Shown one piece after another: positions 1 to 57,260 of a stretch of DNA of 64,000 nucleotides (the first letter of the stretch is position 1; each line of letters opens with the position of its first letter). The stretch covers positions 186,001 through 250,000 of the forward strand of contig JAPDFW010000067.1 of NCBI GenBank assembly GCA_028826165.1, in the 5' to 3' direction. The position numbers were made by a program, and so were the translations under genes. The stretch is from Anaeramoeba ignava BMAN (lineage: Eukaryota; Protista; Anaeramoebae). The notes under the pieces are model-generated. The model saw nothing but the letters and a program-made list of their open reading frames with translations, was not told where the DNA came from and did no database searches.

Positions 1-1490
1 AAAATTAAATTAATTTCAAAATTAAATTCATTTCAATTCAAAATTAAATTCAATTCATTTCAATTCAAAATTAAATTAAATTCAATTCATTTCAAAATTA
101 AATTAATTTCAAAATTAAATTAAATTCAATTAAATTCAAAATTAAATTAAATTCATTTCAAAATTCAATTCATTTCAAAATTAAATTAAATTAATTTCAA
201 AATTAAATTAAATTAAATTAAATTCAATTCAAAATTAAATTCAAAATTAAATTAAATTCAATTAAATTCAATATTAAATTAAATTCATTTCAAAATTAAA
301 TTAAATTAAATTCATTTCAAAATTAAATTAAATTCAAAATTAAATTAAATTCATTTCAAAATTAAATTCAAAATTAAATTAAATTAAATTCATTTCAAAA
401 TTAAATTCAAAATTAAATTAAATTAAATTCAATTCAAAATTCATTTCAATTCAAAATTCAATTAAATTCAATTCATTTCAATTCAAAATTAAATTAAATT
501 CAATTCATTTCAATTCAAAATTAAATTAAATTAATTTCAAAATTAAATTAAATTAAATTAAATTAAATTCAAAATTAAATTAAATTCAATTAAATTCAAT
601 ATTAAATTAAATTCATTTCAAAATTCATTTCAATTCAAAATTAAATTAAATTTATTTCAAAATTAAATTCATTTCAAAATTAAATTCATTTCAAAATTCA
701 TTTCAAAATTAAATTAAATTAAATTCAAAATTCAATTCAAAATTAAATTAAATTCATTTCAAAATTCAATTAAATTAAATTAAATTAAATTAAATTAAAT
801 TAAATTCATTTCAAAATTAAATTAAATTCAATTCAAAATTAAATTAAATTAAATTAAATTAAATTAAATTAAATTCAAAATTAAATTCAAAATTAAATTA
901 AATTCAAAATTCAATATTAAATTCATTTCAAAATTAAATTAAATTAAATTCAATTAAATTCAATTCAAAATTAAATTAAATTCAAAATTCAATATTAAAT
1001 TCAAAATTAAATTCAAAATTAAATTAAATTCATTTCAAAATTAAATTCATTTCAAAATTAAATTAAATTAAATTAAATTCAAAATTAAATTAAATTAAAT
1101 TCATTTCAAAATTAAATTAAATTAAATTCATTTCAAAATTCAATTCAAAATTAAATTAAATTCATTTCAAAATTAAATTAAATTAAATTCATTTCAAAAT
1201 TAAATTAAATTAAATTCATTTCAAAATTAAATTAAATTAAATTCATTTCAAAATTCATTTCAATTCAAAATCAAATTAAATTCATTTCAAAATTAAATTC
1301 AAAATTAAATTAAATTCAATTAAATTCAATATTAAATTAAATTCATTTCAAAATTAAATTCAAAATTAAATTAAATTCAAAATTAAATTAAATTCATTTC
1401 AAAATTAAATTAAATTCAAAATTAAATTCATTTCAAAATTAAATTAAATTAAATTAAATTCAATTCAAAATTAAATTTTTATAAATTTAG
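1..1490 (+). repeat. 3' part of a large intron of the NRPS-like gene, filled with mixed pentamer repeats (AAATT/CAATT/CATTT/CAAAATT)
   Basis: Repeat tract with essentially no G ends in ATAAATTTAG (AG at 1489-1490). An open frame follows immediately and is continuous with ORF 1705..8490. The donor lies upstream of the window. Confidence 0.75.
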
Positions 1491-4400
1491 CCTTCAAATA
1501 ACATCCTATTGGAAAAAACAATCACAAAACATAACACCAACTAACTTTTTCGGTAACGAAAAAAAAGATTTCAGTAAAAACACTTCAAGAAAAAGACAAA
1601 TCTATTCCACTTTCCCATTCCGGTCAGATTTCATTGAAAACAAAGCAAAGGAATTTAGCGATCAAGCAACAATCGATTTCACACTTGCATCAATAGCACT
1701 TTGCGTGACACAATTCACACAATCACGAAACATATCACTAGCAGTTTGTTGTTACAACTCGTTCATCTACACAGATCAAGACTTCCATCTTTTGGAATTC
1801 AATCCGTATCTCCTGAATATACAAACAACAGAATCGCGCACTTTCAACGATTTGGTCACGAATATCGCACAGAAAAGAAAAGAAATCCAACCGTTCCAAG
1901 AATTCCCGTTTTCGGAATTTTTTTCAAGTGAAGAAATGCTTCAATCCAAATCAAAAGATGAAAAAAAAACGTTTCCTTGCAAAATTTTAGTTGTTTTTGA
2001 CCACGGATTTGTAACGGAAAAGATGAAGAACTTCGAGCTTATTCTGCGACATCACGATCCAAAACTTCAGTTAAAAACAAATACTCAATTCAATTTATCG
2101 TTGAATATTGACAGTAAATCAGAAACAAGCGCCCAAAAAAGAAAAACAAATCCGTTTTATTCCAAGCAGTATTTTGTGCAGGATTACTTCGACTTTGTCG
2201 TTAGTTTTGGATTTGAAGAGGAGACTAACAAGAAGATTGTCCCGAATTGGTTGTTTTTTGACCGAATTTTTTACAATAGCGAAAAAATCAATCAATTATT
2301 TGTGTGCAATTTCTACGAGCATTTCGCAAGAATCGCAAAGACGAGCAACAAGCAAACAGCGGTGGGAAGTGTGCCTGAAATAACGGGGAAAGAAGAGGCT
2401 GTTGTAGTGAATGAATGGAACAATATATCGGGGAAAAATTTCACAAAAACGAAAAAACTAGCATCACTGGGAATTCCGATGATTTTCCGCAAAATCACGA
2501 AAAAAAGACAAGGAGCAATAGCAATCCGCTCGAAAAACGCGAAGGTGACATACGAACAGCTTGAATACCGCTCGGATCTGTTTGCAGTTTATTTGCAAAA
2601 GGAGCTGAAAATACGATCAAACACAGTGATCGGGGTTTCGATGAAAAATTCAGTCGAAACAATAGTGGCGCTACTTGGGATAATCAAGGCAGGGTGCAGC
2701 TATATCGCGCTGAGACCGGAGTTCTCGGCAAACCTTTTGGCACGGATCATCCGGAAACTGGATGTGAAACATGTGCTGAGCGGTGCGGCATCAGCTGGTG
2801 TTTTTGAGAAACTAAAAAAAGAATCAAAAACGGAAATAAATACACATTTAATCACTGTGAATGAGTTGGAGTCTATTCTCAAACAGGTGCAGAGATCGGA
2901 AGTTCGCAAGACAAAATTCAAAGTAAAGGGCAATCAAGTGGCGATTGTTTTCCCTCGGTTTTCTGACGACGGCAAGCTCCAGTTCTTCACATTAACTCAC
3001 GCAAACATCATCACAAAATTCATCACAATTCAATCCTCAATTAATTTATGCAACGTAGTCGGGTTCTGCTCACCGATATATCACGAACAGTCACTGATCG
3101 AGTTGTGGGGCACGCTGATCAACGGAGGTAGAATTGTTGTCTTCTACATGAAAAACTTGCTCAGTTCCAAGTTTGAGGCGTTTATCCGACAATCAGGCAC
3201 AAAAGTGCTTACTCTCTCAACTAGTGTTTTCCAACAAATTGTTTCTCGAGACTCAACATTTATTCGCCAGCAACAACAGCCATCTATTGAGCACACAGAC
3301 CCGCAAACACAGAAAAGCACGTGGCCGTTCCATTTGTTTGATCTCCTGATGATCTACGGTGAACCCATTGCATACCGCAAATTTTTCGAGTTTGTGAAAA
3401 CGGAGAAGATGAGCCTTCCGAAGAAACTCGTCTATTGCTTCGGTACTCCGCAAACAGCATCCATTTTCGCACTTCTCCCCGTATGGGACGAGTTCCAATG
3501 GACAGGCAGGAAGGAGGTTGTTTCTGAAAACGAAGACGATGTCAAAGACGAAAAACAACTCCCGGTTTTCATCCCGAATATCCACTACTGGATCCACAAA
3601 TACAAAAGCAGCACAGGGTTTCTCCCAATAGGCACGCCGTGTAGCGACTGCGAGGTCTACGTTCTCAACAGCAAAACCCTCAAACCAGTGCCTTTTGGCG
3701 TCAGTGGCGAAGTTTATGTGTCTTGTCTTTCAATCGGCACTTTGTTGGATTACAACGGAAATGAAGACGAAAAAACCGACAAATTTCGCGCTCAATTTGA
3801 CAGAATTTTTGTCCCTAATCCATTCGAGAAATCCGATTCTGAGAACAAACTGCTTTTCAACACAGGAATTCACGGATGCATTCTTTCTAGCGGGAAACTG
3901 GAATTTTACGAGTATCAACAACCTCAGGAAATCCGTCAGGTGTTTGTCAACAGCGAGTTTGTGAATGTGAAGGCAATTGAAGAGGTTATCAAAAAACACA
4001 GTAAAGTCAAACAGGCAGTGGTTCTCGTTCGCGATGCAGAAAACTCGGAACGAAAACGCATTGTCGCATATCTGGTTTGCGAAGAGACAATCCCTCCTTC
4101 GTTCCAGGAGCTTTCGCAGTTCATCCAGAACAGACTGCCACAAAGTCACGTTCCTGTTTCTTATGTTTTTGTTGAAAAAACCCAATTTGGTTCTGATAAG
4201 ACAGAAATTTCGCGCGCAATGCTTCTTGCCAAATACGCACATGCGCAAGAAAAAACAAGCTCTACAACAGACACAACCGTCACAAGAAACGCAAATCAAT
4301 CTGCGCAGTTCAAACCCCCGAGTAATCCTACTGAGGAGTTTCTTTGCAAAACGTTTGCGTCTGTTCTTAATTACGAACAAGTCGGTGCGTCGGATAATTT

Positions 4401-7400
4401 TTTCGCACTCGGAGGCGATTCCATATCCGCAACAAGAATCGTCGCAAAGGCTCTTCATGCGGGATTGCGGTTCTCAACAGAAGATCTTTTCCTCAATCCA
4501 GTTGTGTCTGATCTAGCAGTCTTTATCGAAAAACAAAAGGAAAAGTTCCAGCAAAACATAGATTTCTCTGCTCATCACAGAAGATTCTTTGAGCAGCAGC
4601 TCCCAGAGCCGAGCCAATCAGAGCGTCTTGTTTTCATCAATCTCGACCACTCAGTGAATCTGAAGTATCTTAAAAAGGCTTTTTTGATGATCCTTGCCCA
4701 GCACGAAAATCTCCGATTGGTTTTCCCAGAAAATCATCCTCATTTACAATCTTTGGAGGATCTCACTCATAAAAAGAGCAAAAGACATCATAAAGACTCC
4801 TCTGTGTTTTCGGTGCTGAAACTGCCAACGAGCGAGATGGAGCCCAAACAGATTGGCAAACAATGCGCGAAGATCCAACAATCTCTCAGAATAGCAAAAG
4901 GTCCGTTGATAAAATTTGTTGTTTTTGTCGAGGACCAAACGCAGGACACAGAAGCAGAGAAGCTCAACAACGAGGATGCGTTCTCGATTTTCCATGTTGA
5001 GCAGAAACAATCCCAACAGGAAAAGACCGAGAAAGACTTTTCCAAAGACCATTTCTTGGCAATGATTTTGATCCACAATTTACTTGTCGACACCGAGTCA
5101 ATCAAAAAGCTCGTCTCCCAATTGCAAACAAACTACGAAACAGTCAGAAGCTCCTTTGAGAATTTTGTCGAGATCCCAGCACCATCTCCAGTGACTGAGT
5201 ACTACCACTATCTCAACTCCCAAAAAAAGCTAGAAATCACAAAAAAATCATACACTTTCTGGCAGACAATTTCAAACAGAAAGAAAAACTACGTCAAACC
5301 AGTCCCAAAAAACATATCCGAGGCAGGAACAAATTTTTACGAGGATCTGACCAACATCCGCGTCAGTTTCGACGACAAAACCTCGCATCTCATTTACTCA
5401 GAAATCGCTCGGAAAGACGAATACCAGATGGCCGACATCCTCGTGACTGGGATCGGTCTCGCTTTGACTGATTGGACATCCAGCATATACAACTTCATCC
5501 ATCTCATCGAGCCTCCCAATCCCCATTCGCAGAAAACACACGGCTTTATCGCACCGGTAGAAAACACGATCCCAGTTTTGATCGCCTTTACACAACCAAA
5601 TGTCGTAAAAGACAATATAAAGTCATTTGAACTGGTCAAAAAGCAATTGAGAGAATTCCGTTTGCATGTCCAACAGCTCAACAAGATCCTGTATTACAAC
5701 GATGCGCAGAACGCAAACGAAAGCGAGGATCTCGACTATAAAATGGAGTTTGAAAAACAAACTCAAAATGAAAAGCAAATTCAATCACCCTCGCAACAAC
5801 GCAAATCGTCCCAATCCGAGAAGCAAAAGGAGATTCTGACTTCGGGACTTGGCGCCGAGATACCAGACGCTAATCTCAATCTGTTCAAATCAGACGAAGA
5901 CGATGATGACGAGCAAACGGGAATGAGACAAGATGCTCCAGATTCTTCCGAGGACGAAGACATTTCCTTCTTGAAAGTCCCACAATCCAAACAGGAAGAA
6001 CTCAAAATCCTCTCGCAAGCAGAAATCGCAATACGCTTTATCGGAAACGTTGATTTCAACTCCTTCTCTCTCGGAAAAGTTTCCATTGATCCACTAACAG
6101 AACCCAAAAAATCACGAAAACTCAACTCCCCAAAAGCGCAAAACCCGTATTTGATTGAAATTATCAGCTTTGTTCAGCAGGGCTGCGTCTCTTTCAAGCT
6201 CATTTACAACAAGAAGCTTTTCAAAGCGGAAACCATCAAATCGCTTGCGAGAAACATGATGAAAATCTTGATCAAACTCTCGAAGGATATCCGCAAAGAA
6301 AACCAACACAAAAGCAAAAGCAAAAGCAAAAAAACAGAAAACGAGACGCAGGAAGAAAACGATATCTTTGCAAACTTCCCACTCGCAAAAAGTCTTACCG
6401 TAAGCGTCATCCGGGAGCTTTTTGAAGAGGACTCTCTTATCGAAGAAATTCTTACCCCATCTCAATTCCATCAGGAAACAATCCGTTTTTTCTTAAGAAA
6501 AGATCAGCTGTCAAAAAGTCACATTGCAAGTCAACTTCTTCTTCGGTTCACAGCATCCGAATTTGACGAGAACAAACTGCGCCAAGCATGCCAAATCTTT
6601 GTCGACCAGCATCCTGCGATGCGATCCTATTTTGTGCGCAACCAATCCAAGCAATCCAATATTCTTCATATAATCCGCAAAAAGGCAGAGATACCCTTTA
6701 GGTTTATGAAGTTTGAACAAATGGACGATACCTTCAAACAGGAAATTGCGCAGGAACGGCAGCACCCGTTCAAATTTTCCCATGCGCCGTTGATCCGCTT
6801 CTCTCTCTTCTCAATTGAAAAAGATTCCCTTTATTTACTTTCAATCGCATTTGAATCGTTTCTTCTTGATTTCTGGTCAATTCCTTTAATGATACAGGAA
6901 ATATTCTCCAAATACTGCGAACTCGCCTCAAATTCCACCGACGACAAAAAGGATCTTCTTCCCACTCTTCCCCATCCACAACAGATATCTCTCCACCAAA
7001 ATCTCCACAAAGAATACATTTCTTATGAACACAATCTTTCTTTGTCGAAATCAAGAAGATTCTACAGATCGTTTATGAAGGATTTCGACATCAACACCCC
7101 GATAATCCCGACCAAGGAAGGCGTCTCCAATTTCCAGCAATTACTCCTCAATCAAGAAAACATTGGCGAATTGAAAAGCCGCTCAAAAAGCCCGAACCTG
7201 TCTAACATGCAGCACAGTCGAAGTAATGAAAATGTCCCCATTTCACCCAAATTGGATCGTTCTCAAATTCCTGCCAAAAAAATAACACCGTCCGATATTG
7301 ATATCAAGGGACAGTTCTTTGTCAACACTGCAGAATTCAAGGAAATCAACGCGCATGTTGGAGCGGATTCTCTCACAAAAATCATCTCTTCTTTGCGAAC

Positions 7401-8490
7401 AAACAACCTTACTTTGAATTCATTTATACACTTTATTTGGGCGCTTACTCTCAACTTTGTGAATCCTAAAACCCCAACCTATTTCGGTACAACAATCTCA
7501 GGAAGACCAGCAGAGCTTGGCGAAGTTGCAGACAAAATTGTCGCCATGATGAGTAGAGTCCTCCCTATCAAATTCGAGCTCTACAAGGACAAGACTATCT
7601 TGGCTCATATTGCGCAAATTCAATCCCTTCTTCTCAAATCATCTCTCAACCCTCATGTTACAGACTCACGAATCCGCAAATGGTGCAAATTCCCCAAAAA
7701 AACTTATCTCTACAACGGCGGTGTTGTTGTTTTTGAGGGATATCCCAAAGACAGAATATTCCCCCTGCGTGATCTTGGTGATGAAAATTACGAGGTTGTT
7801 CTTGATCTTTCCAAATTGAATCCCTCCTTAGACATCATGTTCTCCAATCTCTCGGTCATGGAATCCTTAAGACATCCTCTTTCTCTTATCGTCTTCCCGT
7901 CGGGACAAGACTTGCTTGTGCGCATTGTGTACAACCAGGCACTTTTTGAAGAAAGAACAATTAATCGCTTGATTGATTTATTCACTCAATTTTTCAAATT
8001 GATTTCTTCATCATTCACAAACTTAGATAAGCCTATTAAGGATCTTCTCAGTAAATCAGAATCTTCCGATTTCATCCAGAAATCCCAAGACAAATCCCTC
8101 AAAAAAGATAAATCATCTCCCCAAATCGATCAATCCCCATCTCCATTGTCAAAAGAATCAGACAATTTGGATCAAGACCACATTTTCAAACAGGGATATT
8201 TAACAAAAAAAGGTGGTCATGGTTTCACTGCAAACTGGAGAAAGCGTTGGTTCATTCTTAAAAACGACCAGTGCTTTTACTACTATAAGTCCCAAGGCAC
8301 TGCACAACCTTCTGGTTTGATTCCAATGAAAGGTGCTTCCATTGAACCTCTTCCAAATCACAAAAAGAAAAATTGTTTCCAAATCAAAACAGAATACAGA
8401 AGTTATCCAATTTATGCTGAATCAAAACAAATTATGGATTCTTGGATTGATGAGATTACTAAATATTTAGCAAGAATTAACAAGAATTAA
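1491..8490 (+). CDS. NRPS-derived multidomain protein, last exon (5'-partial): C (second half) - A (degenerate) - T/PCP - E (degenerate) - C (DCL-like, degenerate) - PH
   Basis: Frame is open from 1492 (LQITSYWKKQ...TLASIALCVTQFTQSRNISLAV...TFNDLVTNIAQKRKEIQPFQEFPFSEF, C-domain-like). A-domain motifs: VTYEQL, IIKAGCSYIAL, LPIGTP...VYVLN...PVPFGVSGEVYV. T domain DNFFALGGDSI with Ser at 4420. E-like QHENLRLVF, HNLLVDT, DILVTGIGLALTDW, NFPLA. C-like QHPAMRSYF, APLIRFSL, LLDFWS, YFGTTISGRP. PH domain KQGYLTKKGG..NWRKRWFIL..AESKQIMDSWI at ~8180-8475. Confidence 0.9.
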
Positions 8491-8624: not shown

Positions 8625-10973
8625 TTAATTTTGATTTTGTGGAAGAATTTCAAGTTGTTTTGTTTTTCTTGAATATTTTGAACTAAATTTTTTTAAACTA
8701 TTTGTTAAAATTTTTCCAAAATATTTTTTTTGGGAATTCTTTTGATTTTGGAATTGATCAAATGGTGAATCTTCTTGATTTTTTGAATTGGAAATCATTT
8801 TGTTTTTGCTTTTAAAAATTTGATTATTTTCTTGATTTTTCTTTTTTGATTTTTGTAAAAAATGCTTAATTTTTTTGATTGAAAATATAAGTATGAAAAG
8901 AACCAAAATTGCTAAACATAATAAAAAGAATTTTTGCAATTTTCCCTCATAAATTCGGCAATATATCTTTGTTAATGAAGAATGCTTCAATTTGAATTCA
9001 TTTTCGTTTTCATTCTTTTTGTAAATTTCAATTTTGTTGTTATTGTTCAAATTCTTTTCAATCAACCTCTTTGTGTTAATAAAAGAAAGATTATAAGAAT
9101 TTGTCAAATTGGAAAGACCAGAATAAATTTCATCAATTGAAATGATGTTATTTGTGACAAAATCGCAATTTAACCACGAAGTTTTATTCTTAATTATATT
9201 ATCAATTGCGCTTGAAACTTGAGGCATTAATTGATGTGATTCCGATAAATCAACACACGCTCCATTTTCGAATATGAATCCTTCATCACAAACAACTTTT
9301 CCATTCTTACAAATCGCATTGTCAATGCATTTCACACAACTATCCAATTTTTCTTGGTTGTTGATATCTGAATCGCAATATGGTAATTGCTTGAAAAAAA
9401 ATATGTTCATGAGAAAATATCCCAAAAACGCTGTAATTGAAATTAAAAAGAAACAATAAACCCAAAACAAAATTTCTATCATAATCTTTTTTCTTTCTTG
9501 TGTTGCTGTTTCTTTTTCAAGATTTCTTTCTGTTTTTTGTTTTGGTGATGTAGGAAATAATGTTCTTATTGGTGTTTTTTCTGTTTGATTAATAATTGTT
9601 TCTTGGTTTTCCACATATTTATCGATTAAATTGAATGAATTTTGATTTTGATTCTCATTTCCTATTAAATTGAATGAATTTTGATTTTGATTTTCATTTC
9701 CTATTAAATTGAATGAATTTTGATTTTGATTTTGATTTCCTATTAAATTGAATGAATTTTGATTTTGATTTTCATTTTCATTTCTAATTAAATTGAATGA
9801 ATTTTGATTTTGATTTTCATTTCCATTTTTTAGTGAATCTAATTGGGGTATTTGTGGGTAAATTGACCTGAAATAATTCCTTGGTTTTTCTGATTTCTTT
9901 AATTCATGTGAATTTTGAAGAAATTTATCAAAAGTTGAGGAATCATTTGGCTTTTTTTTCTCTTCAGAATAAATTTTCTGATGAGTTTCTTGTTTTTTTG
10001 GTTTGAAAAGAAAATCTAAATTATCTTTTGAGGGTGTTAATTTTGTTTTTGAAGGTGATTTTTTCTTTTTGTTTGATTTATGTTTTTTTTGATCTTCATT
10101 AATAGGATGTTCCAATGGAATTCGTTTTTTATCTCTTGCATTTTTTGAAATGGAATTATCATTAGATCGATTTGGTTCTTTTCTAGTATATGAAGAAGTA
10201 GTTTCTATTAAATTATTATTTTCATTTTCATTTTCAATTTGATTTTCATTTTCAATTTGATTTTCATTTTCAATTTGATTTTGATTTTGATTTTGATTTT
10301 GATTTTCAATTTGATTTTCATTTTCAATTTCATTTTGATTTTCAATTTGATTTTCATTTTCAATTTGATTTTCATTTTCAATTTGATTTTCAATTTGATT
10401 TTCAATTTGATTTTCATTTTCAATTTCAATTTGATTTTCATTTTCATTTTGATTTTCATTTTCATTTTGATTTTCATTTTGATTTTCATTTTCAATTTCA
10501 ATTTGATTTTCAATTTCTTCTTGTTTTTTTGGTTTTTTTTTTGCTGATGAAAGCTGATAAATAAGTTTTGAAGAACTATTTTGGAATACATTCTTTAAAG
10601 ATAACCGTTTGTTATCCTTTTCTTTTGTCAAAAGATTTTTATTTAATTTTTTTTTTGATTTTAATTTTTTTACATTTTCTTTTTCTTTTTCATTTTCATT
10701 TTCTTTTTTTGAAATATTTTCTTCATATTTTGTTGGACTTTCATAACTAATTTGTGTTGGACTTTGATAAAAATCATTTTTTATTTTTGAATCATTTATT
10801 ATTTTGGGATTTTTTGCTTTTTGTTCTTTATCTATTTCTTCAAATTTTGTTGGACTTTCATAAGTTGATTCATTTTGTTCTTGAAAAGATTCTTTAATAT
10901 CTTCTTGGTTTTCTTTGGTTTTGTTTTTTCTTTTGCCTCTTTTCTTGTGATGTTTTTTTATTGTTGTAACTGA

Positions 10974-11005
<32 letters not shown>

Positions 11006-11138
11006 TTTCTTTTTTTTTGAGACGTTGATAAATTCTTACATAATCTTGTTTTTTTTTTCTTCCTGTTGATATTTTTCCACCCATTTTTTCAATTTTGGAA
11101 ATTAATTGAGGAATAGTAAATCTGCTTGGATCACTCAT
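8625..11138 (-). CDS. Src1/Heh1/MAN1-like inner nuclear membrane protein (N-terminal HeH/LEM-like helices, long disordered linker, two TM segments around a Cys-rich luminal region)
   Basis: N-terminus DPSRFTIPQLISKIEKMG..RKKKQDYVRIY resembles HeH. TM1 at ~9390-9480. Luminal YCDS..CVKCIDNAICKNGKVVCDEGF..GAC matches the Man1-Src1 pattern. TM2 at ~8880-8935. Confidence 0.7.
9625..9830 (-). repeat. Coding 39-bp tandem repeat, ~5 copies (NENQNQNSFNLIG)
   Basis: Repeated TTCCTATTAAATTGAATGAATTTTGATTTTGATTTTCAT-like units on the + strand. Confidence 0.85.
10215..10515 (-). repeat. Coding hexamer repeat (ENENQIENQ)n
   Basis: TTTTCA/TTTTGA/TTTCAA hexamers. They also generate the spurious MKIK/IFIF ORFs in other frames. 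Confidence 0.85.
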
Positions 11139-13936: not shown

Positions 13937-16900
13937 ATGGCTTTCTTTAAAGGAATTTTTAAAAAAACAAAACAAACAAAAACAACAAAAACAACAAAAA
14001 ATTTTGATGTTTTTTCAAATGATTTTCCAATTGAAAGTAGTGGATTTTTAAATCATTCTCCATCAGGAGAAATAATAGAAGATTTATGGCAAACAAGAAA
14101 ACAAATAACAGACAATGTAATTTTTCAAAAAAGAAAAATTTCTCTTTAATAAATTTTAATTATTATTTTTTTTTGAAAAATTTTTAAAATTGGTTAATTT
14201 ATTTGTTTTTAAAGGATGCTTTAACTGAATGGTACATGAAACTTGGTACAACTTTTATTGAATTATATAATAATTGGGAACCTAATTATCAAGAAGATGA
14301 ATTTATAAAGCAAATTACACAAAAAACAAAAGAAGAAATGCAGAAGGAAGATCTTCAAAAAAATGAAAATAAACCAAAAAAAGGAAAAAGATTTAAATGG
14401 AAAAGAAAAGGAAAAAAAGATCAAAATAAACAAAATGAAGACGAAATAGATCCTGAAGTCTTAGAAAAAATTGTTATTCAAGAAGCAATCAATAAAGATT
14501 ATGCTCAACCTACAGAATTTATAATTCGATTTCTTCGTGTTTTAATTACTTTTAAAACTGATTTAATGAAAGGTAATTTTTAATTTTTTCAATTTATAAT
14601 TTTTCCAATTTAAAATTTTTTCAATTTAAAATTTTTTCATTAAGAAATTGAAAAAAGAATTTCAAATCAACAAGCAGAACTTAATATTTTAACAGCTGTT
14701 TCACTTGAAGTTATATCTATTTTATCTCGTTCAAAATTTAATAGAAATCGTTTAATCAATTATGGTTTATTTCAAGAAGTTGTTGAAATTGCAACTTTAA
14801 CAAATACTTTATTTTCTTTTTTTCTAAATAAGGTTTTAATCAATTTTTAATCAACAAAAATTTTTTGTGTTCATTTCCTTGTTTTTTCTTTCTTCAGGAT
14901 TTACAATCAAAACAAAAAGAAAAAGAAAAAGAAGATAAAATTATCACTTTAAATCTCTTTCAAACACAAAATTTATTATTGATTGAATTTCTAATTACAA
15001 AGATTTTAGATATAATTTCACATTTTTCAATGATTAAACCAACATATTTAAATGAATCATTTTTCTCAAATTTTTCCCAATCAGATAAATCTGATCTTGA
15101 ATGGATAATTAAATCAGGATTAATTGATTCACTTGTTAGTAAGTATTTAATTTTATTATTTTAAAAATTTTTTTTAAATATTTAATATATTTTTTTTAAG
15201 GCTGCCTTGAAAAAATGAGGAAATTAAATGAATTCGTTCTTTTTAATCAAATTCAATACAATATCCAAATCAATTTAATCAACACAATGCTTGTAATATC
15301 AAGTTCAGGTCTTCTTTCCAATGAAACATTTTACAGAATCACAGATATATTAATCGGAATGTTATTACGTCCAAATTTATCACTTCCAGGATTAAAAATT
15401 CATTCATTCGAAGAATCACAAACAAATAACCAAAATAACTCACAAGAAAAATCAGATAAACCAATAATAACAACTGATGTTCTTTACTATTTTTGGATCC
15501 CAAATTATCACCAAGAACACAATCCAGATTTATCTGGAAACGATCTTTTATCAACAGAACAAACTCAAAATATAGAATTTCAAATCAGAATAGTTATTCT
15601 TCAATTATTTAGGGAATTAATTGCTGATAATGCAAATGCAGAAGTTCAAGTCGGAAAAAATGTTAAGTTTTCTCATTTATGTGATTTTATTCTTTGGGTT
15701 GCTCAAAATTTTCCTTCTGATATTGTTGCCAGTTTTATTCAAGAGAATAATAATTTAATTGAAACAAAACTAACAGAAATTTCAAAAAAGAAAAAAGAGC
15801 AATTATTGGACCAAATCAAAAGACAATCAAAAGAAACTACTCCTATTCAATTTAATTTTAGTTCAAATATTGATTTCCGTTTGAATGAAAAAAATATTTA
15901 TGATCCTGAAGGTAAAACAAATAAATTTTTCATCCAAAAAATAAATCCCATTTTAAAATATCTTCTTTTTAAAAAGAATTCAAAAATAATTTACCAAGAG
16001 AAGTTCTTATAACCAAAAATTTTGACATTTCTCAATGCAATCGAATTACAAAACCTGTTCGTAAAGTTCAAAATGTTGACAATCCTTATATTCATAGATT
16101 ATTCCAAATTTTAGGAGATATTTGTCTTGAAAGTACAAATAATTCACAAGCAATTCGCCAATTAAAATCAAACCAAGAAAATATTTCAAATACAAATACA
16201 AATACAAATAAAAGCAAAAACAAAAACAAAAATAAAAATAAAAATAAAAATGAAAATGAAAATGAGGAAAAGGATGAAGTTTCACAATCATGGAAAAATA
16301 TTCAAACTTGGACTTCTACATCTGAAATTAATATGAGAATTAAAGATAGGATTTTATTTGTTTGCTTGGATTTATTTCATTATAATTTTCATAAATCATT
16401 CACAAATACAAACGCAAGAAATTTTGTACTTTCAATTTCTCCTCAACTTCAAGTAAATAACAAAAGCAAAAATGAAAAGATTAAAAAAAATAATTTTTGT
16501 TTTTAAATAATTTTGTTTTTTTTAGTATGAAGTTCTAATGCTATTCGCAAATAGTTTGGATCAGGAAAGTTTAGATCTTTTAGGATCAAGAAATTTATGG
16601 AAAATATTCTTTTCAAATTTTTTCTATTATGAATTAAATAATGATTTTATTGGACCTCCAAAATCAGAAGAATTACTTTTCCAAATATCTGATTATTTAT
16701 TCAAATTCATTACATATGTTGGTTCAAATGAAAAAATAACAAATATTGAGGAATGCAAAGCTTTAGTTAATTTAATCAAAGAAAATTGGTTTAATTTGAA
16801 TGTTATCACGCAAGCATTAGATTCATTGATAGTCATTTTAAAAAATGTTCCCAAAATGACAATATCTTCACTTTATCAAATTAAAGCAATCAAAATATTC

Positions 16901-19900
16901 ACCGATTTATCAAAGGATTTATTTGAATTTCAAACATTCCAAAATTGTTTAAATGAAGAACAAAAGAAGAAATATATTAATGAATGTGCTACTACTAAAG
17001 AATGGATATTTGAATCAGAAACCAAAAAATATTCGCTTGATTTGGTTTATGAGATTCGGCTCAAATTATTTGAGGTTATTGATATATTCTTCATTGATTT
17101 TGAAATGAGATCAAAATTTATTGAAGAAAATGACCAGAATTTAGCTTTAATTAAGCTATTATTGTGCCTACTTCTTGAGCCTCAAATCCAAAAATACTCA
17201 TTGTATCAATTGGCTAGATTTATGCTTGCTGCACCTGAAGAAACACCATCCTTAATTTGGTTTGAATTGTTCACATCATTTGTAGAATTTTTAATGTCTA
17301 TTCATCAAAAACAAGAAAGAATAATGTCTCAAAAATCACAAAGTCATAAATTCATTTTATTGATAAAATCCATTCTTTTTGCAACTTCTTCTTGTATTTT
17401 TCAACATCAAAACCCTTTGCAACAACTTTTTGTATCTGCGGGTTCTTTTAAAATGCTTGTCACATTTTTGAGTAGTTCTCTGTTTGGGAATAATTTAATT
17501 GTGGATGTTTTGAAAATGTTTATTGAATTGTTTCGAGGAAATAGAGAAAACATGCTTGAATTCAAATATGATGTTGGATACAAAAACTTGGAAAATTTGA
17601 TATATAATGCTGAGCTCCAAAAACCATCAATTTCAACTTATAATTTATTATTGAATATGGTTGTTAACAATAATTATTCTCCACCCATTTTTGAAAATGA
17701 AAATGATTTGGATAACGCGAATCAAAACGAGTATTATCATGATGATTATTTTAACGGGATGTTCCCATATATTGATTATAATTATTTTGATAAGGAAAAG
17801 AATTTTTTGATCCAAAATCCAGAAGTTATAATGATAATGTTTGAAATGTTTTCAAAAGGAAAAAGAAAAGAAGATTTGCAGATATTTTATAATTTGTTGG
17901 AAACATTTTCTGAAATTTGTGAAATGTCAATTCATAATGCATCTTGTTGTTGTGAAGTTGGACTTGTTTCTTTTCTTGCAAATTTGATACCGAATCTTCA
18001 ATCATATGAAGAATATTTCGAAAAAGAAAAAGAAGATGAAGATGAAGAGAAAAAAAAATTATTGCAAATAGTTCTTGAACAAACAATAAGATTACTTGGT
18101 GTTATTGGATCACATAGTATGACTGTCAAAGAATTGAAAACTTTGTTTATTTTGCTGAAAAGTTTGAAAGGAGACTTTCGTCCGCCTTATTCTCATTTAT
18201 TATTAGAAGCAATGCAAAAAATGCTTGGTTCAAAAAGTATTGACAAGAAAATACAACCAAAAGTATTTTTTGATTTCAATGGAAGATCATCATGTCTTGA
18301 AATACCACAACTTGATAAATGGCCATCATCAAAAGGATACTCGTTTTCAACATGGTTGAGAGTGGAAAACTTTGAAGATCCTTTAAGCAAACCAAATTAT
18401 GAACCAAGAATATTGAGTTTTTTAAATGAAAGTGGTCATGGTATTGAAATATACTTCAAATACAGGAAACAAGCAAATAATTCAGATCCAAAATCCAAAT
18501 CAAGCACAAATACAAACATCGAAAACGAAATTATACCAAATGTAAATCAGACAAAAACAAAATCCAGGAAAAAATATAAAACAATAAGCCTCAATAACTT
18601 GAAGTTGGATTTACAAGAGATGAATGAAAATAGTGAAGATCAAAATTTGGATTTGTCTCGGTATTCTGAACCCATTGCAGATTTAGTTTTGAAAGTTGTT
18701 TTGCCAAATAAAGTTGATTATTGCACTTTTCCCTTTTATATATCATTAAGAAAATGGTGTTTTTTCGCAATTACCCATTCATCACCAAGATGGACTTCAT
18801 CAGGAGAAGTTAAATTTTATATTGATGGTTTTTTTGTTGGCAAATATCCATTAGAATATCCAAATATTGACTTTCCATTGACAAAAAACAGGATTGGATC
18901 AAATTTCATCGTAAAGCAAAAAGATAATTCAAATACTCAAGGAAACCATTTTTTTGGGCAAATGGGAACAATTTATTTCTTTACAGATGCTCTTCATCAA
19001 ACACAAATTACAGGAATATATCAATTAGGACCTGATTATATGTCTTCTTTTGAAGATGCATCATTCAATTTAGCTTCAAACACACCAAATAGCCCAAGAA
19101 TAATAAGAAAAACGATGAGTTATTCAGGAAGTCCTCTTACATCTCCATATACTATCAACGCATTAGATGGATCTTTAGCAGAAAAAATATTTTTCAATTT
19201 CAATAGTAAAGCTTGCGATCTTCATTATTGTATTGACCAAAGTCCTGTTTCTGTAATTCAAAAGGCAAAAATTGTTGGAATGTTTAAGTATGTTTCAAGA
19301 GATTTGGAAGATATTATTCATTGTTTAGGAGGAATCAAAATATTATTCCCGCTTTTAGCTCAACTTGATCAACCAGCTGCTTCTCCTCAAAATTTAAAAT
19401 TTTTAAATATGGATAATTTTCCAAAAGAAAAAGAAAATGAAAATGAACAAAATCAAACAAATTTAATGGATTTTAATTCTTTAAAGCAAATGATTGATTA
19501 TTCAATCGATCCAAATATGTCAGGACAAATATTACAGTTAATCTTCCAAATGTTAGTTCAAAATCTATCTAATCAAGAAGATATGAAACGTTCTTATGGA
19601 TTTCAAATAATAAGCCATCTTCTACAAACATTTTCACCAAAACATATCACAATAAATGTTGTTAAATCACTGAAAACATTTATTATGTCAATTCAAAACC
19701 AAGATTTATTAACAGATTTAATTAACAATTTTGTCTTGGATTTCGATAATTGGATATATAGTAGTTTTGAAGTTCAAATCAAATTGATTAAACAAGTATT
19801 TTCGAAGTTATTAGTCCCAAATCCTTTAAATAATTTCCATGGTAAAATCTCAACTCAAGATATTATGAATATTCTTCGTTTATACTATTGGATTACAGCA

Positions 19901-22900
19901 GAAACTTATTCAAAAGGAATTGAGAATAGATTCCATTCAGTAACAAAAGAACTGATTGGAAAAAGACCTTCTCTTGAAGAATCAAAACAAATCCGCAAAT
20001 TGTTAGTTCAATGTATCACTAATTTGATTTTGCATTCACAAAATTCACAAGAAATTTCATCAGTCATTATGTATTCGTTTGCAATGATTGATATTAACCA
20101 TAGTGATGAGATTAAAGATATTCTTTTGGTTATTCATGATTTAATTCATACAGATGCTAAATGTAAGGAATGGTCAAATAATTATAATAAAGATTCTGAG
20201 AATCAAAATCAAAACCAAAAAAAGCAAATTGAAAAAGAAACAGAAGCTCAGAAATTGAAACTTCTTGATTCTCTCAATTCTTTCAAGTTTATGGATACTT
20301 TTATTATATTTCTCAATTCTGATGATGATGATCTTCGTGCATTATCATTGCATATTTTATATGATTTAGGGAATTACTCAGATTTATATCCGAAGAAGAA
20401 ATGGAAAAGTAGATTAATCTCAAAAAAAGGATATGAAACAATACATAACATTTTGATAAGTCATTCGTTTACAAAAAAAATATGTAATGTTTTGTTCTCA
20501 ATATTAGTTTCATCGCAAGTTGAAATTACTGATCAAGAAAAAAAGCATTACTATCTTATAAAAAGATCAAGTGTTTTAGAAACAATTTTTTATTTAATCC
20601 AGAATAACGATCCAAAAGAATTGACAGTCCATGCAACCAATACAATTATTAATATATTAAAAGGAAATGATACAAACAAAGAAATTATGATCAAGCAATT
20701 TGGATGGCAGCAATGGTTGATTGATATATATCTTTCCAAAATGAATAAACAGCAAACTGCTGAAGACGAACAAAATATTGAAGATGCGCAAAAATTTCAG
20801 TTGTTCAAAAAGCAAATTATTGAAGGGATTTTCACAATATTTCGTATCATCCATATTTATAGTATTTTTAGTGATAAAAACGGCACTCAATGCTTTGAGC
20901 AAACTACACATTTTGTTCAAAATACTTCGTGGGAAACGGAAAATATGGAAATTAATTTTTTGCGTAGACTTTATTCAGATATCATTTCTGAGATTAAACA
21001 ATTGATAAGCGAAAAGAAAGGAATTAAAAATGTTGTAACAAATTCAGCAATTTTTGCTGATAATTTCATTAGTTTGTCAGATTTGTTTTCCAAGTTTGTT
21101 AGCTTTACATTTAAAGAGATTCCAAAAACAACATCTGAAAATGCACCGATACCAACCACAGTATCATCAATCAAAGATGGAGAGAAAAAACTTTTACGAA
21201 AAGAATCAATAGCTCTGAACCAGAAATTCAAAAACAAAAAAACAATTAGAAGAACATTAGGGCCAGATTATTTCCGTATTTTAAATGAGTCTCGAAAATC
21301 ATCGAATCAAGAAAAAAAACCAAATGAAATGCAAGAGATTGACGAATTATTAACGATTCATAAGAATTATGGTGATTTTATTCTAACAAGTCAATTCAGG
21401 ATGAAGGGAATGGATTGGGAAGATTTGGATATTATTAAAGATTTTATCAATTTGTTTTCTGAAATTGGATTGGTTTACTTAACAAAAAGCAAGTCTGTGA
21501 TTTCTGAAAAGGAAAAATTGAAGTTTATTATCCAAAATATCATTTCTATAATTTTAAACGGTATCAAAAATTTTGAGATTGAGCAAAGTGATTGGTTTTT
21601 TGAAAAATTATACGATATCTTCGGCACAATCCAAAAAATATCATCTCTTAAACCTATTAGAAATGGGATTGCATCGATCATACTTTCATACTTATTTTCA
21701 GCACTTGAAGACTCAAAAAATCAAACAAAAAAACAAGGGATTAAAAGAAAAGACTCAATGAGTCAAATTCCATTACAAAATTTTGGAGGAAATGAACTTG
21801 AGATTTCTACTTTAGAACTTTTTGATTTTTCGCAAAAATCACCTTTATCGAGTGTATCAGAAAAAAAGCCATTTGAACAAATATTATTAGAACATATCCA
21901 AAAAATATTCAAGAAATCATATTCGTTTCTTGCAAGCACTGTTCGAGATAAATCAGGCATTCTTCTTCTTCCAAATAACAAATCAAACTCATATATTTTC
22001 CATCAAACAAAAGAGCAACTTATCGCAAGATTTAGCAGTCCTGATTGGAAATTTGCGATTGAAGATTTTTTCCACAAGGAAGTTGATAAATTTCGGATTG
22101 AAAAAGAAATTGAATGCAAAATTTATTCACAAGAAATTATAACTTCAGTTCAAGAATTGCAAATAAATATCAACAAGGAATTAACAGACAAAATGCAATC
22201 TATGAAAAAAACAACCAACGAATTGTTGAATAAATGGTTTCCATCAAAAGTGCGAGAGGAAAACCAGAGAATTGCGAAATTGGTTGAATTAAAAACAAAG
22301 AAGAAGGCAATATCCGCAAGAAAATGGACTTGGGCACTTAGAAGTGTAAGTAATGAAAGAGGACCTTGGGGATCTCGAGATTCCTCAATTCCGATTCATT
22401 GGAAACTTGACAGAACAGAAGATGATCATCATCGACGCAAAAAACTGAAACAGAACTATCATTTCGATAACCACTTTGATGCCTCAATAAGAAGAGATGA
22501 AAGTTCACGAGAAGCAGCAGATAAAATCATTATCGAAACATACGACAAAATGCAGCTTGAGAAAATGACAAATCAAGCGAAGAAATCACTTTCTGGAATT
22601 AAAATGATTGCAAATATTGATGGAGAAGATAATGCAGAAGATGAATTTGATGACAGCACAGTGAATTACAACAAAGATGAAATATCAACAATGGAATCCA
22701 ATGAAAACACACCCACAAATATAAATGTTAAGAAAGTTATATATCGAACAGAATGCTCTTTAGTTGCTCCGCTCACAATCATACCCGGAATTCTTGAAAT
22801 ATCAACAAAATCACTTGATTTTTATCCAAATAAAGAGGCTGCAATTGAAGCCAATAAGGATTCTACACTTGATAAATACAATATTCTTAATAGAAGTGCT

Positions 22901-25900
22901 GATACTATTTTTAAAGACCGTTCTTGGCAATTGAAAGAAATTCGAAAAGTTTATAAAAGATCATACAGACTAAGACAATCCGGATTGGAAATATTTTTAA
23001 CCAACAAGAAAAATTTCTTCCTTCATTTTCCAAAACAGAATAGAAATGTTGTTTTCCGAAAAATTATCAATTTGAAATTGCCTAATATTTTCAAAATTGA
23101 TTCAGGAAGACCTTCAGAATGGCTTCGAAAAACACATCTTACTAAAAAATGGCAGAAGAGACAAATATCCAATTTTGATTATTTAATGGAATTGAATGTT
23201 ATTGCTGGAAGAACATATAATGATGTTTCTCAGTATCCTGTATTTCCTTGGATAATCTCAGATTATGATTCAGAAGATTTGGATTTGAATGATGATAAAA
23301 CATTTAGAGATCTTTCAAAGCCTATTGGAGCGTTAAATGAAAAGAGGCTTCAAGAATTTATTGATAGATATGAAAGTTTCGAAGATCCAGATAATGTTAT
23401 TCCACCATTTTATTATGGTTCACATTATTCAAGCACTGGTAAATATTTTAATTTAATTTTAATTTCAAATTTAATTTTCAAAATGAATTTTAATTTCAAA
23501 ATGAATTTTAATTTCAAATTTAATTATAATTTCAAAATGAATTTTAATTTCAAAATGAATTTTAAATTTAAATTATAAAAGCAATTATTTTGTACTATTT
23601 AATCAGAATGGAACCATTTACAACTTTGTCAATTAAATTACAAGGAGGAAAATTCGATCATGCAGACCGTTTATTTAGTTCGATTGGACAAACATGGAAA
23701 AATTGTTTAACAAATTCTTCAGATGTTAAAGAATTGATTCCTGAATTTTATTATTTCCCAGAATTCCTTCAAAATTTTAATCAATTTGATTTGGGAAAAA
23801 CACAAAATGAATCAATAATAGGAGATATAATTCTTCCCAAATGGGCAAAAAATAGTGAAGATTTTATAAGAATAAACAGAAGAGCTTTAGAAAGTGAATA
23901 TGTTTCACAACATTTACACGAATGGATTGATTTGATTTTTGGATACAAACAAAAGGGAGAAGAAGCAAAAAAGGCATATAATATTTTCTATTATTTAACT
24001 TATGAAAATTCAGTTAATATTGATTTAATTACTGATGAAAGAGAAAGAAAAGCTATTGAAGAGCAAACTGAGTTTTTTGGACAAACACCAAGTCAAATAT
24101 TCACAAAACCACATCCAAAAAGATATTCACTTGCAGAATCAAATGCAATTCCTTTATATTGGGATTTTTCGAAATATGCAAAGATTTATACAAATTTTTT
24201 GGATTTAACAGATTCAGGAATTTTATTTGTTCATTTTGACAATCGTTTAACAATATTTGATAAGAAAAGATATCTTTCTGCATTCAAATTAATAGCAACA
24301 TCAACATCAACATCATCACCAAACAAATCAAATTCTTTATCTGGACAAACAGGAAATGAGAGTTTTGAAATTGGGAAGGAAGAAAGCAAACATCAACAAC
24401 ATCAACGTTCTGTCAAAAGCCGGAAATCATTTTACAAAATCAAGTCACGTTTATCTGTTAAATATAAAGCAAAACCTATTATATTTGATCAAGAAATTAA
24501 TAAAGATTTTCAAGATTTTAGTAAAATTTCAAATATTGATAAAAATCAAAATGAAAATCAAATTGAAAATAAAAATCAAAATCAAAATCAAAATCAAATT
24601 GAAAATCAAATTAAAAATCAAATTAAAAATGAAAATCAAAATCAAAATCAAAATCAAAATCAAAATCAAAATCAAAATGAAAATGAAAATGAAAATCAAA
24701 ATCAAAATCAAATTAAAAATCAAATTGAAATTGAAAATCAAAATCAAAATAAAAATCAAATTGAAAATCAAAATCAAATTGAAAATCAAAATGAAAATGA
24801 AAATCAAATTGAAAATGAAAATGAAAATCAAAATCAAAATCAAAATAAATTTGAAAATAAAAATCAAAATGAAAATGAAAATCAAAATCAAAATAAAAAT
24901 CAAAATAAAAATAAAAATAAATTTGAAAATGAAAATGAAAATAAAAATGAAATTAAAAATCAAAATCAAATTGAAATTCAAAATCAAAATCAAAATCAAA
25001 ATCAAAATCAAAATGAAAATCAAATTCAAAATCAAATTCAAAATCAAAATCAAAATCAAATTCAAAATCAAATTCAAAATCAAAATCAAAATCAAAATCA
25101 AAATCAAAATCAAATTGAAAATCAAAATGAAAATCAAAATCAAAATCAAAATCAAAATGAAAATGAAAATCAAAATCAAAATCAAAATCAAAATAAAAAT
25201 AAAAATAAAAATGAAAATGAAAATCAAAATCAAAATAAAAATCAAAATAAAAATCAAAATAAAAATCAAAATAATGAAAATGAAAATAAAAATGAAAATA
25301 AAAATGAAAATGAAAATGAAAATGAAAATGAAAATGAAAATGAAAATGAAAATGATACAGATACAGAAAATTTAAGTGAATCAGGAATCGAAAAAAATAA
25401 GCCAAAAGAAATGCAAAAAAGTCAAATTCAACCACAAGAAACAATAACAGAAATGACAAAACAAATAGAAAATGGAGAAGGACTTGTTTTTGAGGTTGAA
25501 TCATTGATGAAAGGAATCAAAAAAACAGTTGGAGTATCATTTGCATTTGGAATATCGAAGATGAGCAATTGTTTTGCAGTTTTAGAAAATGAAAAAATAT
25601 TTTTCAGTTGTGGATTTTGGGACAACAGCTTCAAATTAACAAATTTAGACAACTCCAAATTAATACAATCAATAACACAACATAAAGATATTGTAACATG
25701 TTTAGCAATTGATCATGAAATATTAGTAACAGGCTCAAGAGATACAACAGTAATGATTTGGAAAATTGATTTGAGAGAAGGAAAAGTAAAAGAAAAACCA
25801 AAGAATATTTTATATGGACATGATGATGAAGTAACAAGTGTGGATTTGAATCAAGAACTTGATATTGTTGTAAGTGGAGCCAAAGACGGAACTTGTATTA

Positions 25901-26328
25901 TTCATTCTTTAAGAAATGCTCAATATGTTCGATCAATTTTCATCAATGAGAATAATGAAAATAATAAAAATGACAGCAATACTCAATCAATAATATCAAT
26001 GCTTAAAATTTCAAATGAAGGAAATATTCTTGTTTATTCTGATAATGATTTATCTATTCGATTGTTTAGTATTAATGGAAAACTTCTTAAAATTATTGAT
26101 ACTTCTCAACATATTAATTCTTGGGATTTAACAAGAAATGACCAATATTTAATCACAGGAAGTGAACAAGGAGTTATACAAGTTCGTCAATTATGGGATT
26201 TGAAAAATATTTATAATTTTGAGTTTAATCATCCTATTTTATTTGTTTGTTTTACTTCTGATGAAAAACATATTCTTGCTGGTTTTGATAATGGAACCTT
26301 AATGATTGGTTCTTTATCTTTTAATTGA
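13937..26328 (+). CDS. BEACH-domain protein, neurobeachin/LRBA/NBEAL type (helical repeats, ConA-like domain, PH-BEACH, BEACH, WD40); 8 exons
   Basis: Phase-consistent exons: 13937-14116, 14215-14572, 14645-14832, 14898-15138, 15201-15911, 15977-16452, 16526-23438, 23582-26328. Motifs: [68 protein letters not shown]|[36 protein letters not shown], and WD repeats ([22 protein letters not shown]). Confidence 0.95.
24541..25352 (+). repeat. In-frame hexamer microsatellite encoding ~270 aa of (NQ/NE/NK)n within the BEACH protein
   Basis: AATCAA/AATGAA/AATAAA units. The frame stays open into the WD40 region. Confidence 0.9.
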
Positions 26329-27071: not shown

Positions 27072-30000
27072 ATGGGAAACTCAGATGTTACAGTAAAACA
27101 TAATTATTCAACAGATAAAATTCGAAGATATCAAAGAAGACTCCGTAAATGTTCAGATCCAATAGCAGTTTGTAATTTTCAAGCTCAATTTACTGAAGTA
27201 AATAATGCAGCTTTGAATTTATTTCAAATGAACCGTAAAGAATTTCTACAAAAAACTCCTGGTGATGTTGCTCCTGAGTATCAAGAACACTTCAATTTAA
27301 AAAGTCAAGAAGTTGCTGGAATGGCTATTTCAAAAGCTTTTCAGTAAATTTCCTTCTTTTTTTTTTGTTTTTTTCATTTTGATTGATTTTTCTTTCTTTC
27401 TTTATTTTAAACTAATTTAGAAGTGAAAAAGGAAATTTTGATTTTAATTATCAATTTAAAGATTCTCAAGGGAAATCTTTTTGGGCGAGAGTTTATGTAA
27501 CTTAAAATTTTCAATTTGAATGATCATTTATTTTATTTTATTTAAATTTTAACAACTCCAAATTTGTTCCAAAATATTTAATTTTAAAATATTTTTTTAA
27601 TCCAAAATAATATTATTAAAGAAAATTTTCAATTAATCCCCTTATTAAAATATTTAATATTATTTTAATTTTAAAAATCTATTTATTCCCAAATAATTTT
27701 ATTTAAAATAATCTTATTAAAACAGATCAAATATTTTAATTTTAAAAATATAATTAAAATTCCAATTAAACCCCTTAATCAAACTATTTAATATTATTTT
27801 AAAATATTTTTTTAATCCAAAATAATTTTATTAAAGAAAATTCCATTTAATCCCCCAATTAAACAATTTAATATTATTTTGATATAAAAAATCTATTTAT
27901 TCCCAAATAATTTTATTTAAAATATTCATCTAAAAAAAGAACTGATCATTTTGATCCAACTCATTTTTTTACATAAAGATCAAATCAAATCAAATCAAAT
28001 CAAATCAAATCAAATCATTTCCAAATCATTTCTAAATTAAATTAAGTCAAATTAAATCAAATTAAATCAAATTATTTCCAAATCATTTCTAAATTAAATC
28101 ATTTCTAAATCAAATCAAATTAAATTAAATTAAATTAAATTAAATTAAATTAAATTAAATCATTTCCAAATTAAATTAAATCAAATTAAATTAAATCAAA
28201 TTAAATTAAATCGAATTAAATCAAATTAAATCAAATCATTTCTAAATTAAATCATTTCTAAATTAAATTAAATTAAATTAAATCATTTCTAAATCAAATT
28301 AAATTAAATCAAATTATTTCTAAATTAAATCAAATCAAATCAAATCAAACTAAATCAAATTAAATCAAATCAAATCATTTCTAAATTAAATCATTTCTAA
28401 ATCAAATCAAATCAAATTAAATTAAATTAAATCATTTCTAAATTAAATTAAATTAAATCAAATCAAATTAAATCAAATTAAATTAAATCAAATTAAATTA
28501 AATTAAATTAAATCAAATCAAATCAAATCAAATCAAATCATTTCTAAATTAAATCAAATTAAATTAAATCAAATCAAATTAAATCAAATTAAATTAAATC
28601 AAATTAAATCAAATCATTTCTAAATTAAATCAAATCAAATTATTTCCAAATTAAATCAAATTAAATTAAATCAAATTAAATCAAATTAAATCAAATTAAA
28701 TCAAATCAAATCAAATTATTTCTAAATTAAATTAAATCATTTCTAAATTAAATTAAATCAAATCAAATTAAATTAAATCAAATTAAATCAAATTATTTCC
28801 AAATCATTTCTAAATCAAATCATTTCTAAATTAAATCAAATCAAACTAAATCAAATCAAATCAAATTAAATTAAATCAAATCAAATCATTTCTAAATTAA
28901 ATCAAATCAAATTAAATTAAATTAAATTAAATCAAATCAAATCAAATCAAATCAAATCATTTCTAAATTAAATCAAATTAAATCAAATTAAATCAAATCA
29001 AATCAAATTAAATTAAATCAAATTAAATTAAATTAAATTAAATTAAATTAAATTAAATCAAATTAAATCAAATTATTTCTAAATTAAATCAAATCAAATT
29101 AAATTAAATCATTTCCAAATCATTTCTAAACTAAATCAAATCATTTCTAAATTAAATCAAATTAAATTAAATTAAATCAAATCAAATTAAATCATTTCTA
29201 AATTAAATCAAATTAAATCAAATCATTTCTAAATTAAATCATTTCTAAATTAAATCAAATCAAATTAAATCCTTTTTTCTTAAAATCAAATAAGGTTACA
29301 CCTCTGAAATTTGGAGAAATTCTTTGGGTTCAAGGATTAATTAAACCAATTCCACGTCCTTTAAATGAACAAAAAGATCTTGATTTGTTAATGCCAGATA
29401 GAAAATTTGTTGATTTTGAATTAGATGATTTTGATGATAGCACTGATACACAATCTACAACAGATTTTTCAATTGCTTTCACCCCAAGAAAAAAGGAATC
29501 ACCAATCAATTCACTTCCAAATTCACCTCCAATTTCAAATTCACCCTCAATTACATTTTCGAATTCAAATTCAAATTCCAATCTACATTCAAATTTAAAT
29601 TCAAATTCAAATCAAAAATCAAAATCAAAATCAAAATCAAAATCAAAATCAAAATCAAATTCAAATTCAAAATCAAATTCAAATCCAAATCCAAATCCAA
29701 CTTTCAATAAATTTCAAACACCTACTTTGGATCAATCTCAATTACTTACTTTAAATAAATCCTCTTCACCAAATTTGAACCAATCTCAAAATCTTTCTTT
29801 GAATCAAATCTATTCACCTTCTTTTAATCAGGTCTATTTACTTGAAACATCACAAGAAGATGAAATTATTGATCAAAATATCCATAAAATTAAATCAATT
29901 GTTAGATCTCTTGATAAACCCAAAATTGAAAAGAAAGTTGTTAATTATTTAAATTTAATCCAAACAAATATTCAATCCTCAACAACTAAATTATCCCAAA

Positions 30001-50562: not shown

Positions 50563-50568
50563 TTCTTT

Positions 50569-57210: not shown

Positions 57211-57260
57211 TTTTTTAAATTGTTATTATTATTATTAATTTGTTGTTAAATTTATTTTCA

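Follow-up and report, generated by a model that had tools for sequence, protein, structure and literature searches.

A PH domain-fused NRPS-like protein with degenerate catalytic motifs in Anaeramoeba ignava

Here, we analyse a 64,000-nucleotide stretch of the Anaeramoeba ignava BMAN genome (contig JAPDFW010000067.1, positions 186,001 to 250,000; the whole stretch is called the window below), in which one uninterrupted frame on the forward strand encodes a module of the nonribosomal peptide synthetase (NRPS) type with a eukaryotic PH domain at its C-terminal end. The module consists of half a condensation (C) domain followed by adenylation (A), thiolation (T), epimerization (E) and DCL-type condensation domains. 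An original prediction, made from the DNA letters, had described this protein as an NRPS assembly line wired to membrane signalling. The domain layout holds, but "assembly line" does not: the ATP-binding and catalytic motifs of the A, E and C domains are lost here, and nearly all of them are lost in the paralogs. We strongly infer from the sequence that the adenylation, epimerization and condensation activities are gone, and the protein very probably makes no peptide, so that the missing release domain needs no explanation. We consider it probable that the protein is a domesticated pseudo-NRPS, acting as a non-catalytic, PH-tethered scaffold or ligand-binding protein.

Gene model and domain architecture

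The source organism of the gene is A. ignava, and the main exon at 1492–8487 (+) is a single open frame of 2332 codons whose stop codon ends at 8490, with a 3' splice site directly before it (AG at 1489–1490). A EukProt transcriptome open reading frame (ORF), P0098, sits in the cluster of this protein; its 2334 residues are Met-Asp followed by all 2332 residues of the window frame with zero differences, and therefore the transcript continues without a break through to the PH domain. Contiguity across ~8030–8180, on which the original prediction depended, is supported: the transcript ORF and the same C-to-PH junction in five paralogs effectively refute a chimeric assembly. The upstream exons that had been expected beyond the window come down to a 5-nt coding micro-exon (ATG GA), as judged from the transcript, which starts with MD, and from paralog comparison. 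No further modules were found upstream; the 30 kb there hold unrelated genes, and the transcript adds just two residues.

Positions 1–1490 (+) belong to intron 1, of which they form the 3' portion; this sequence is a simple, AT-rich repeat with the AG of the splice site at its end, and the 1.8 kb preceding the main exon contains two G only and zero GT. In three paralogs, ATG GA then GT is present 0.1–1.4 kb upstream; exon 1 of the window gene was not found in the assembly upstream of the window. A flank ~170 bases before the window start resembles the start context of the paralogs minus four bases (L011:7821-7840), and the missing exon 1 probably belongs there, which suggests a local assembly error truncating the public gene model. 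The public protein record begins at an internal Met and is 150 residues short at the N-terminus.

Pfam searches of the window frame returned AMP-binding (E 3e-31), PP-binding (1e-9), Condensation (4e-49) and PH (5e-19) and no thioesterase (TE) or reductase (R) domain, bearing out the predicted C-A-T-E-C plus PH in one exon. By Pfam and by subtype profiles, the A, T and C-superfamily domains stand in modular NRPS order; subtypes were called with home-made profiles for E and for LCL/DCL-type C domains together with hhalign. The first C domain (residues 3–313; 1492–2424, +) is LCL-type, and of the complete domain that had been predicted the C-terminal lobe only is there: hhalign gives P=96.9 and E 1e-10 over template columns 219–480 of 503, the region begins at the YWK motif, the N-lobe bearing HHxxxDG is missing, and Pfam gives no match. 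It is followed by the degenerate A domain (2473–4215, +; Pfam, alignments and the fold in the model) and by the T (PCP) domain (4315–4536, +; Pfam and alignment), whose GGDS motif carries Ser979 (codon 4420–4422). The epimerization-type domain (4564–6285, +) falls below the cut-off of TIGR01720; the home-made E profile scores it at 125 bits vs 23–32 for the C profiles, and its best solved relative is GrsA PCP-E. The DCL-type domain (6376–8010, +) scores 174 bits with the DCL profile vs 97 and 36 with the others, McyB C1 being its best solved relative. The T-E-DCL order of the original prediction is thus confirmed. Two other assignments of this last C-type domain were tried and rejected. A Cy domain would have DxxxxD, not the ExxxxD seen here, and McyB C1 matches with E 7e-44 vs 2e-14 for the bacillamide Cy domain; an active terminal C domain fits worse than DCL. 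A variable linker (8011–8166, +) comes next, predicted to be disordered (pLDDT <50 at model residues 579–620), ~40–50 residues long and poorly conserved among the paralogs, and the protein ends with the eukaryotic PH domain (8167–8487, +), assigned by Pfam and by solved-structure matches.

Catalytic motifs and the basic PH domain

In the A domain of the window protein, the P-loop (A3, 2953–2985) is replaced, the Asp235 equivalent is Glu, the A5 Glu is Gln (motif at 3439–3453), the A7 Asp is Ile (3859–3870), and the A8 Arg is Tyr (3904–3924). The A10 NGK is unrecognisable, A10 not being alignable with confidence. As a control for these motif calls, the P-loop, A5 and A8 were found in 198/207, 178/207 and 196/207 bacterial A domains, respectively, in 0/6 members of the paralog family, and, all three, in A. 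ignava's own intact NRPS. Among 70 bacterial A-T didomains, 106 columns are conserved at ≥90%; the window protein keeps 51 of them and three paralogs keep 51–56, whereas none of the bacterial didomains keeps fewer than 94. The lost columns cluster in the P-loop, at the A7 Asp and the A8 Arg, and in the hinge; structural Gly, Pro and Leu residues are retained. Tyr624 (3355–3357) is invariant in 6/6 paralogs, at a position occupied by Gly, Ala or Ser in 69 of the 70 bacterial domains. We take this position to be pocket position 301 of PheA; because Tyr replaces a small residue there, the A-domain pocket may be plugged.

The two complete C-superfamily domains are altered in a similar manner. In the E domain, the catalytic His is Asn (HNxxxD at 5074–5091), the EGHGRE motif is eroded (5500–5523), and an acidic insertion lies near 5700–5980. 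In the DCL domain, HHxxxDG has become ESxxxD (6853–6870) with both His lost, and the SGR motif is retained (7495–7515); the window protein therefore ends, apart from its PH domain, in neither TE nor R and in a terminal C domain without both His. Across the family, the catalytic His is gone in 5/6 E domains (the sole exception is the paralog on contig C114) and in 6/6 DCL domains, and the structural Asp is kept in all. The residue at the His site varies among the paralogs, being N, H, R or K in E and S or P in DCL. The phosphopantetheine site Ser979 is intact in the window protein, and the Ser is kept in 4/6 paralogs; it is Glu in C115 and His in C8, and in these two it appears to be dispensable.

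The C-terminus scores as PH, as predicted, at 69 bits vs a cut-off of 25, and at 76 bits if the PH region alone is searched (PF00169). Its model has seven strands and a C-terminal helix, the best solved matches are the SKAP55 and cytohesin PH domains, and the net charge is ~+10. The predicted lipid-binding motif K-Xn-(K/R)-X-R is present as K-X8-R-K-R in the beta1-beta2 region, and a KKK patch (8362–8370) is invariant in all six paralogs. With moderate confidence, we predict that the PH domain binds an anionic/phosphoinositide lipid. Of the claimed wiring to membrane signalling, the motif stands and is the sole basis; it is found in four of the six paralogs, the beta1 Lys being absent from the other two.

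Paralogs, origin and competing explanations

Five further loci on other contigs match through to the PH end with the same layout, which makes six genes in total (the named contigs include C8, C59, C101, C114 and C115). The paralogs are 25–37% identical to the window protein, the closest to it being the transcribed C115 copy (37%), and the closest pair within the family reaches 72%. Transcriptome ORFs exist for three family members. Since each of the six PH domains finds its best matches within the A. ignava genome among the other five, and the A-T parts of the paralogs cluster as one group with support 100 (FastTree), one fusion seems to predate the duplications. Please note that, for paralogs with introns or frame breaks, the pieces of the model were linked by X at each break, and such models served in local alignments and trees only. 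Frame breaks as assembled occur in the C59 (L021:3250-3750) and C101 (L023 near 8300) copies. Directly after the C115 paralog, ORFs that by eye resemble a non-LTR retroelement were noticed, first gag-like and then endonuclease-like (L015:7989-9999).

No homologs outside A. ignava were found in word-indexed searches or in a full profile search, in which a DCL-PH profile was run against 1.84 billion representatives and the full-length matches were all A. ignava. Held-out paralogs score 364–644 bits in leave-one-out tests and the match list ended at 284 bits; therefore a comparable ortholog should have appeared. The coverage of this search is incomplete, because the C8 and C59 paralogs are themselves missing from the match list, and absence in A. 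flamelloides is not shown by it. Among ~365 non-Anaeramoeba proteins fetched, none carries a PH domain. A lateral, bacterial origin of the NRPS module is likely because every named non-Anaeramoeba match is bacterial and the A. ignava genome is rich in lateral transfers (PMC11550330). The lateral acquisition that had been claimed agrees with these matches; the donor was not resolved in our FastTree analysis, which places the family on a long branch and had no fungal NRPS rows. Host integration of the gene is borne out by the spliceosomal introns, the six paralogs and the transcript, in line with the domestication originally proposed.

We propose that part of a bacterial multimodular NRPS (half C, A, T, E and DCL) would have entered an ancestor of A. 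ignava and been fused there, once, to a host PH domain; the adenylation, epimerization and condensation chemistry would then have been lost, and the fused gene duplicated to six copies. The basic PH domain on its flexible linker would dock the 2334-residue protein on an anionic or phosphoinositide-rich membrane, where the folded dead module might serve as a platform to which proteins or small ligands bind. The scaffold role, the location and the partners of the protein are put forward weakly.

Besides the motif losses, the invariant Tyr624 and the loss of the carrier Ser from two paralogs, two results speak for this pseudo-NRPS reading. Purifying selection is seen in every domain (dN/dS 0.06–0.20), these values being rough, since they come from one pair (C114 vs C101) that does not include the window gene and has near-saturated, AT-biased synonymous sites. 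The AlphaFold model of A-T has a pLDDT of 83.6 and matches NRPS A-T structures, a resemblance to be read with care because the underlying alignment is mostly bacterial and biases the model to that fold. Other points weigh against the reading. The label "scaffold" names no partner. Some C domains are active without the second His (PMC11546977), and several paralogs still have the A10 lysine and the A5 glutamate. In the window protein and three paralogs the carrier Ser is intact, the genome encodes a phosphopantetheinyl transferase (PPTase) of the AASDHPPT/Sfp type, and T has the lowest dN/dS (0.06) of all domains.

Some of these points would also suit a membrane-tethered carrier or acyl relay, an explanation we regard as unlikely, in which the intact NRPS, a carboxylic-acid-reductase (CAR)-like enzyme or an acyl-CoA ligase would load a phosphopantetheinylated T domain in trans, and C-type domains devoid of their His would position the substrate for non-canonical transfer to a membrane acceptor. 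The Ser979 conserved in four paralogs, the strongest constraint falling on T, and a genome that encodes both a PPTase and active adenylating enzymes speak for such a relay; an altered motif need not abolish the activity of a C domain (PMC11546977), and the ExxxxD pattern recalls the DxxxxD motif of Cy domains. However, the Ser is absent from two paralogs of the same architecture, including the closest, transcribed C115, the replacement of the His differs between paralogs, unlike a conserved new active site, and a Cy domain matches far less well than the DCL profile and McyB do. A neighbouring idea, to which we give a decidedly small chance, is that the family forms a class of membrane-recruited effectors, whose phosphopantetheinylated carrier and dead E and C clefts would bind or relay an acyl or peptidyl ligand at the symbiosome membrane, the ligand possibly coming from the host's intact NRPS or from bacterial symbionts.

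More doubtful still is a regulatory pseudo-enzyme that would bind the intact C-A-T-C-A-T-R synthetase or its product and bring it to a membrane such as the symbiosome. That synthetase is present in two copies in the same genome, and the glycopeptide X domain, an altered-motif C/E fold that recruits other enzymes, offers a precedent (PMC11546977); yet our tree (FastTree) did not give a sister relation of the family to the intact NRPS, and six divergent paralogs for one enzyme are hard to explain. That the module is an active one making a D-amino-acid-containing product at the membrane, i.e., the antiSMASH-type reading, is very improbable: it has the canonical domain order, the intact carrier Ser and the retained fold on its side, but the P-loop, A5, A7, A8, both catalytic His and the N-lobe of the first C are all lost together, and TIGR01733 scores the window protein at 102 bits vs a cut-off of 317. 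An assembly chimera or decaying pseudogene, to which the start micro-exon missing from the assembly and the frame-broken C59 and C101 copies might point, is hardly credible against an identical full-length transcript ORF, an open frame of 7 kb, the recurrence of the junction at five other loci and purifying selection.

Genomic setting and comparison with known systems

The genome paper lists the locus as antiSMASH Region 27.1, type "NRPS" only (PMC11550330, Supplementary Data 7); its span of 167,936–214,490 corresponds to the annotated gene with 20 kb added at either end. Applied to other listed regions, this rule identifies 7.1, 57.1, 69.1 and 105.1 as four paralogs, and 55.1 and 140.1 as the two copies of the intact NRPS. 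Five of the seven "NRPS" regions of A. ignava are thus the PH-fused family, and the C59 copy is not in the paper's antiSMASH list. The intact two-module enzyme is on contig C99 (L025:2352-8330, L026:1376-3391), with one intron and canonical motifs; its C47 twin appears frame-broken as assembled. Region 53.1 contains a CAR-like A-T-R gene at C97:215033-218557 (-) (L042:1533-5057), whose motifs look intact and which carries a ZZ zinc finger at its N-terminus (Pfam E 1.5e-7); it is a second NRPS-like enzyme in the genome with a eukaryote-type interaction domain. The same paper suggests that NRPS products may gate or select symbiont colonisation, and neither the PH domain nor NRPS degeneracy is mentioned in its main text (PMC11550330). 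The searchable literature yielded no described NRPS-PH protein, as the original prediction had supposed, no whole-module pseudo-NRPS, and, beyond the genome paper, nothing relevant on NRPS in Anaeramoeba or Metamonada.

If our preferred pseudo-NRPS reading is right, a multi-domain biosynthetic machine whose chemistry had gone would have been retained for its shape, coupled to a host targeting domain and multiplied, and the reading of the published genome changes, in that one intact synthetase in two copies would remain of the seven "NRPS" regions. The family has so far come from one species, and the host is hard to manipulate.

As to composition, GC3 reaches 0.46 in the window gene and 0.45 in the C115 paralog, compared with 0.13–0.31 in the neighbours and 0.15 in the intact NRPS; within the window gene, GC3 falls at both ends, and a nearby signal peptide peptidase-like gene has a similar level. 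The convergent neighbour (8625–11138, -) encodes a protein of 837 residues without a Pfam match; its two hydrophobic stretches and Cys-rich loop make it look, by eye, like an inner nuclear membrane protein of the Man1/Src1 type. Farther along the window are a neurobeachin-like BEACH-WD40 gene of several exons with a long Asn/Gln-rich insertion (15215–26328), four tandem paralogs of a small coiled-coil-like protein sharing the start MPDRK (29385–37269; no Pfam match for the first copy), and ordinary host genes for tubulin-folding cofactor D, a villin/gelsolin-type protein and a Serinc protein (44970–62368). A protein with two tandem Ras/Rho-family GTPase domains is encoded at 57240–58424.

Compared with known systems, the window protein is closest in layout to the bacterial A-T-E/DCL modules (GrsA and TycA PCP-E; the McyA-McyB junction), with which it shares the domain order, the E and DCL signatures, GGDS and the fold. 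Unlike these modules, it lacks the catalytic motifs and a release domain and has a halved first C domain, long insertions, a C-terminal PH domain and spliceosomal introns, at ~25% identity. The PH domain resembles the cytohesin/SKAP/DAPP1 type, in that K-Xn-(K/R)-X-R and the beta3 Tyr align with Grp1/ARNO; in contrast to Grp1, Ser aligns with the beta4 arginine and the cytohesin beta6-beta7 insertion is absent, and two A. ignava paralogs differ from the phosphoinositide-binding domains of this type by having no beta1 Lys. High-affinity PIP3 binding by the window PH domain is not implied by this likeness. The glycopeptide X domain also has an altered motif on a C/E fold (HRxxxDD, compared with HN, HR or HKxxxD here; PMC11546977). 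It serves as a docking platform, a role that for the A. ignava module could be proposed at best by analogy; the X domain is a single domain of an otherwise active bacterial line and has known P450 partners, whereas the A. ignava module looks wholly dead, is eukaryotic and PH-tagged, and has its origin in E and DCL domains. A precedent for bacterial-type adenylating domains tied to PKS/NRPS being drawn into eukaryotic lipid signalling is DIP2, known from fungi and animals (PMC9342972, PMC12055004). DIP2 is widespread, consists of tandem FAAL-like domains without T, E, C or PH and needs its catalytic residues; the A. ignava family, known so far from a single species, looks non-catalytic.

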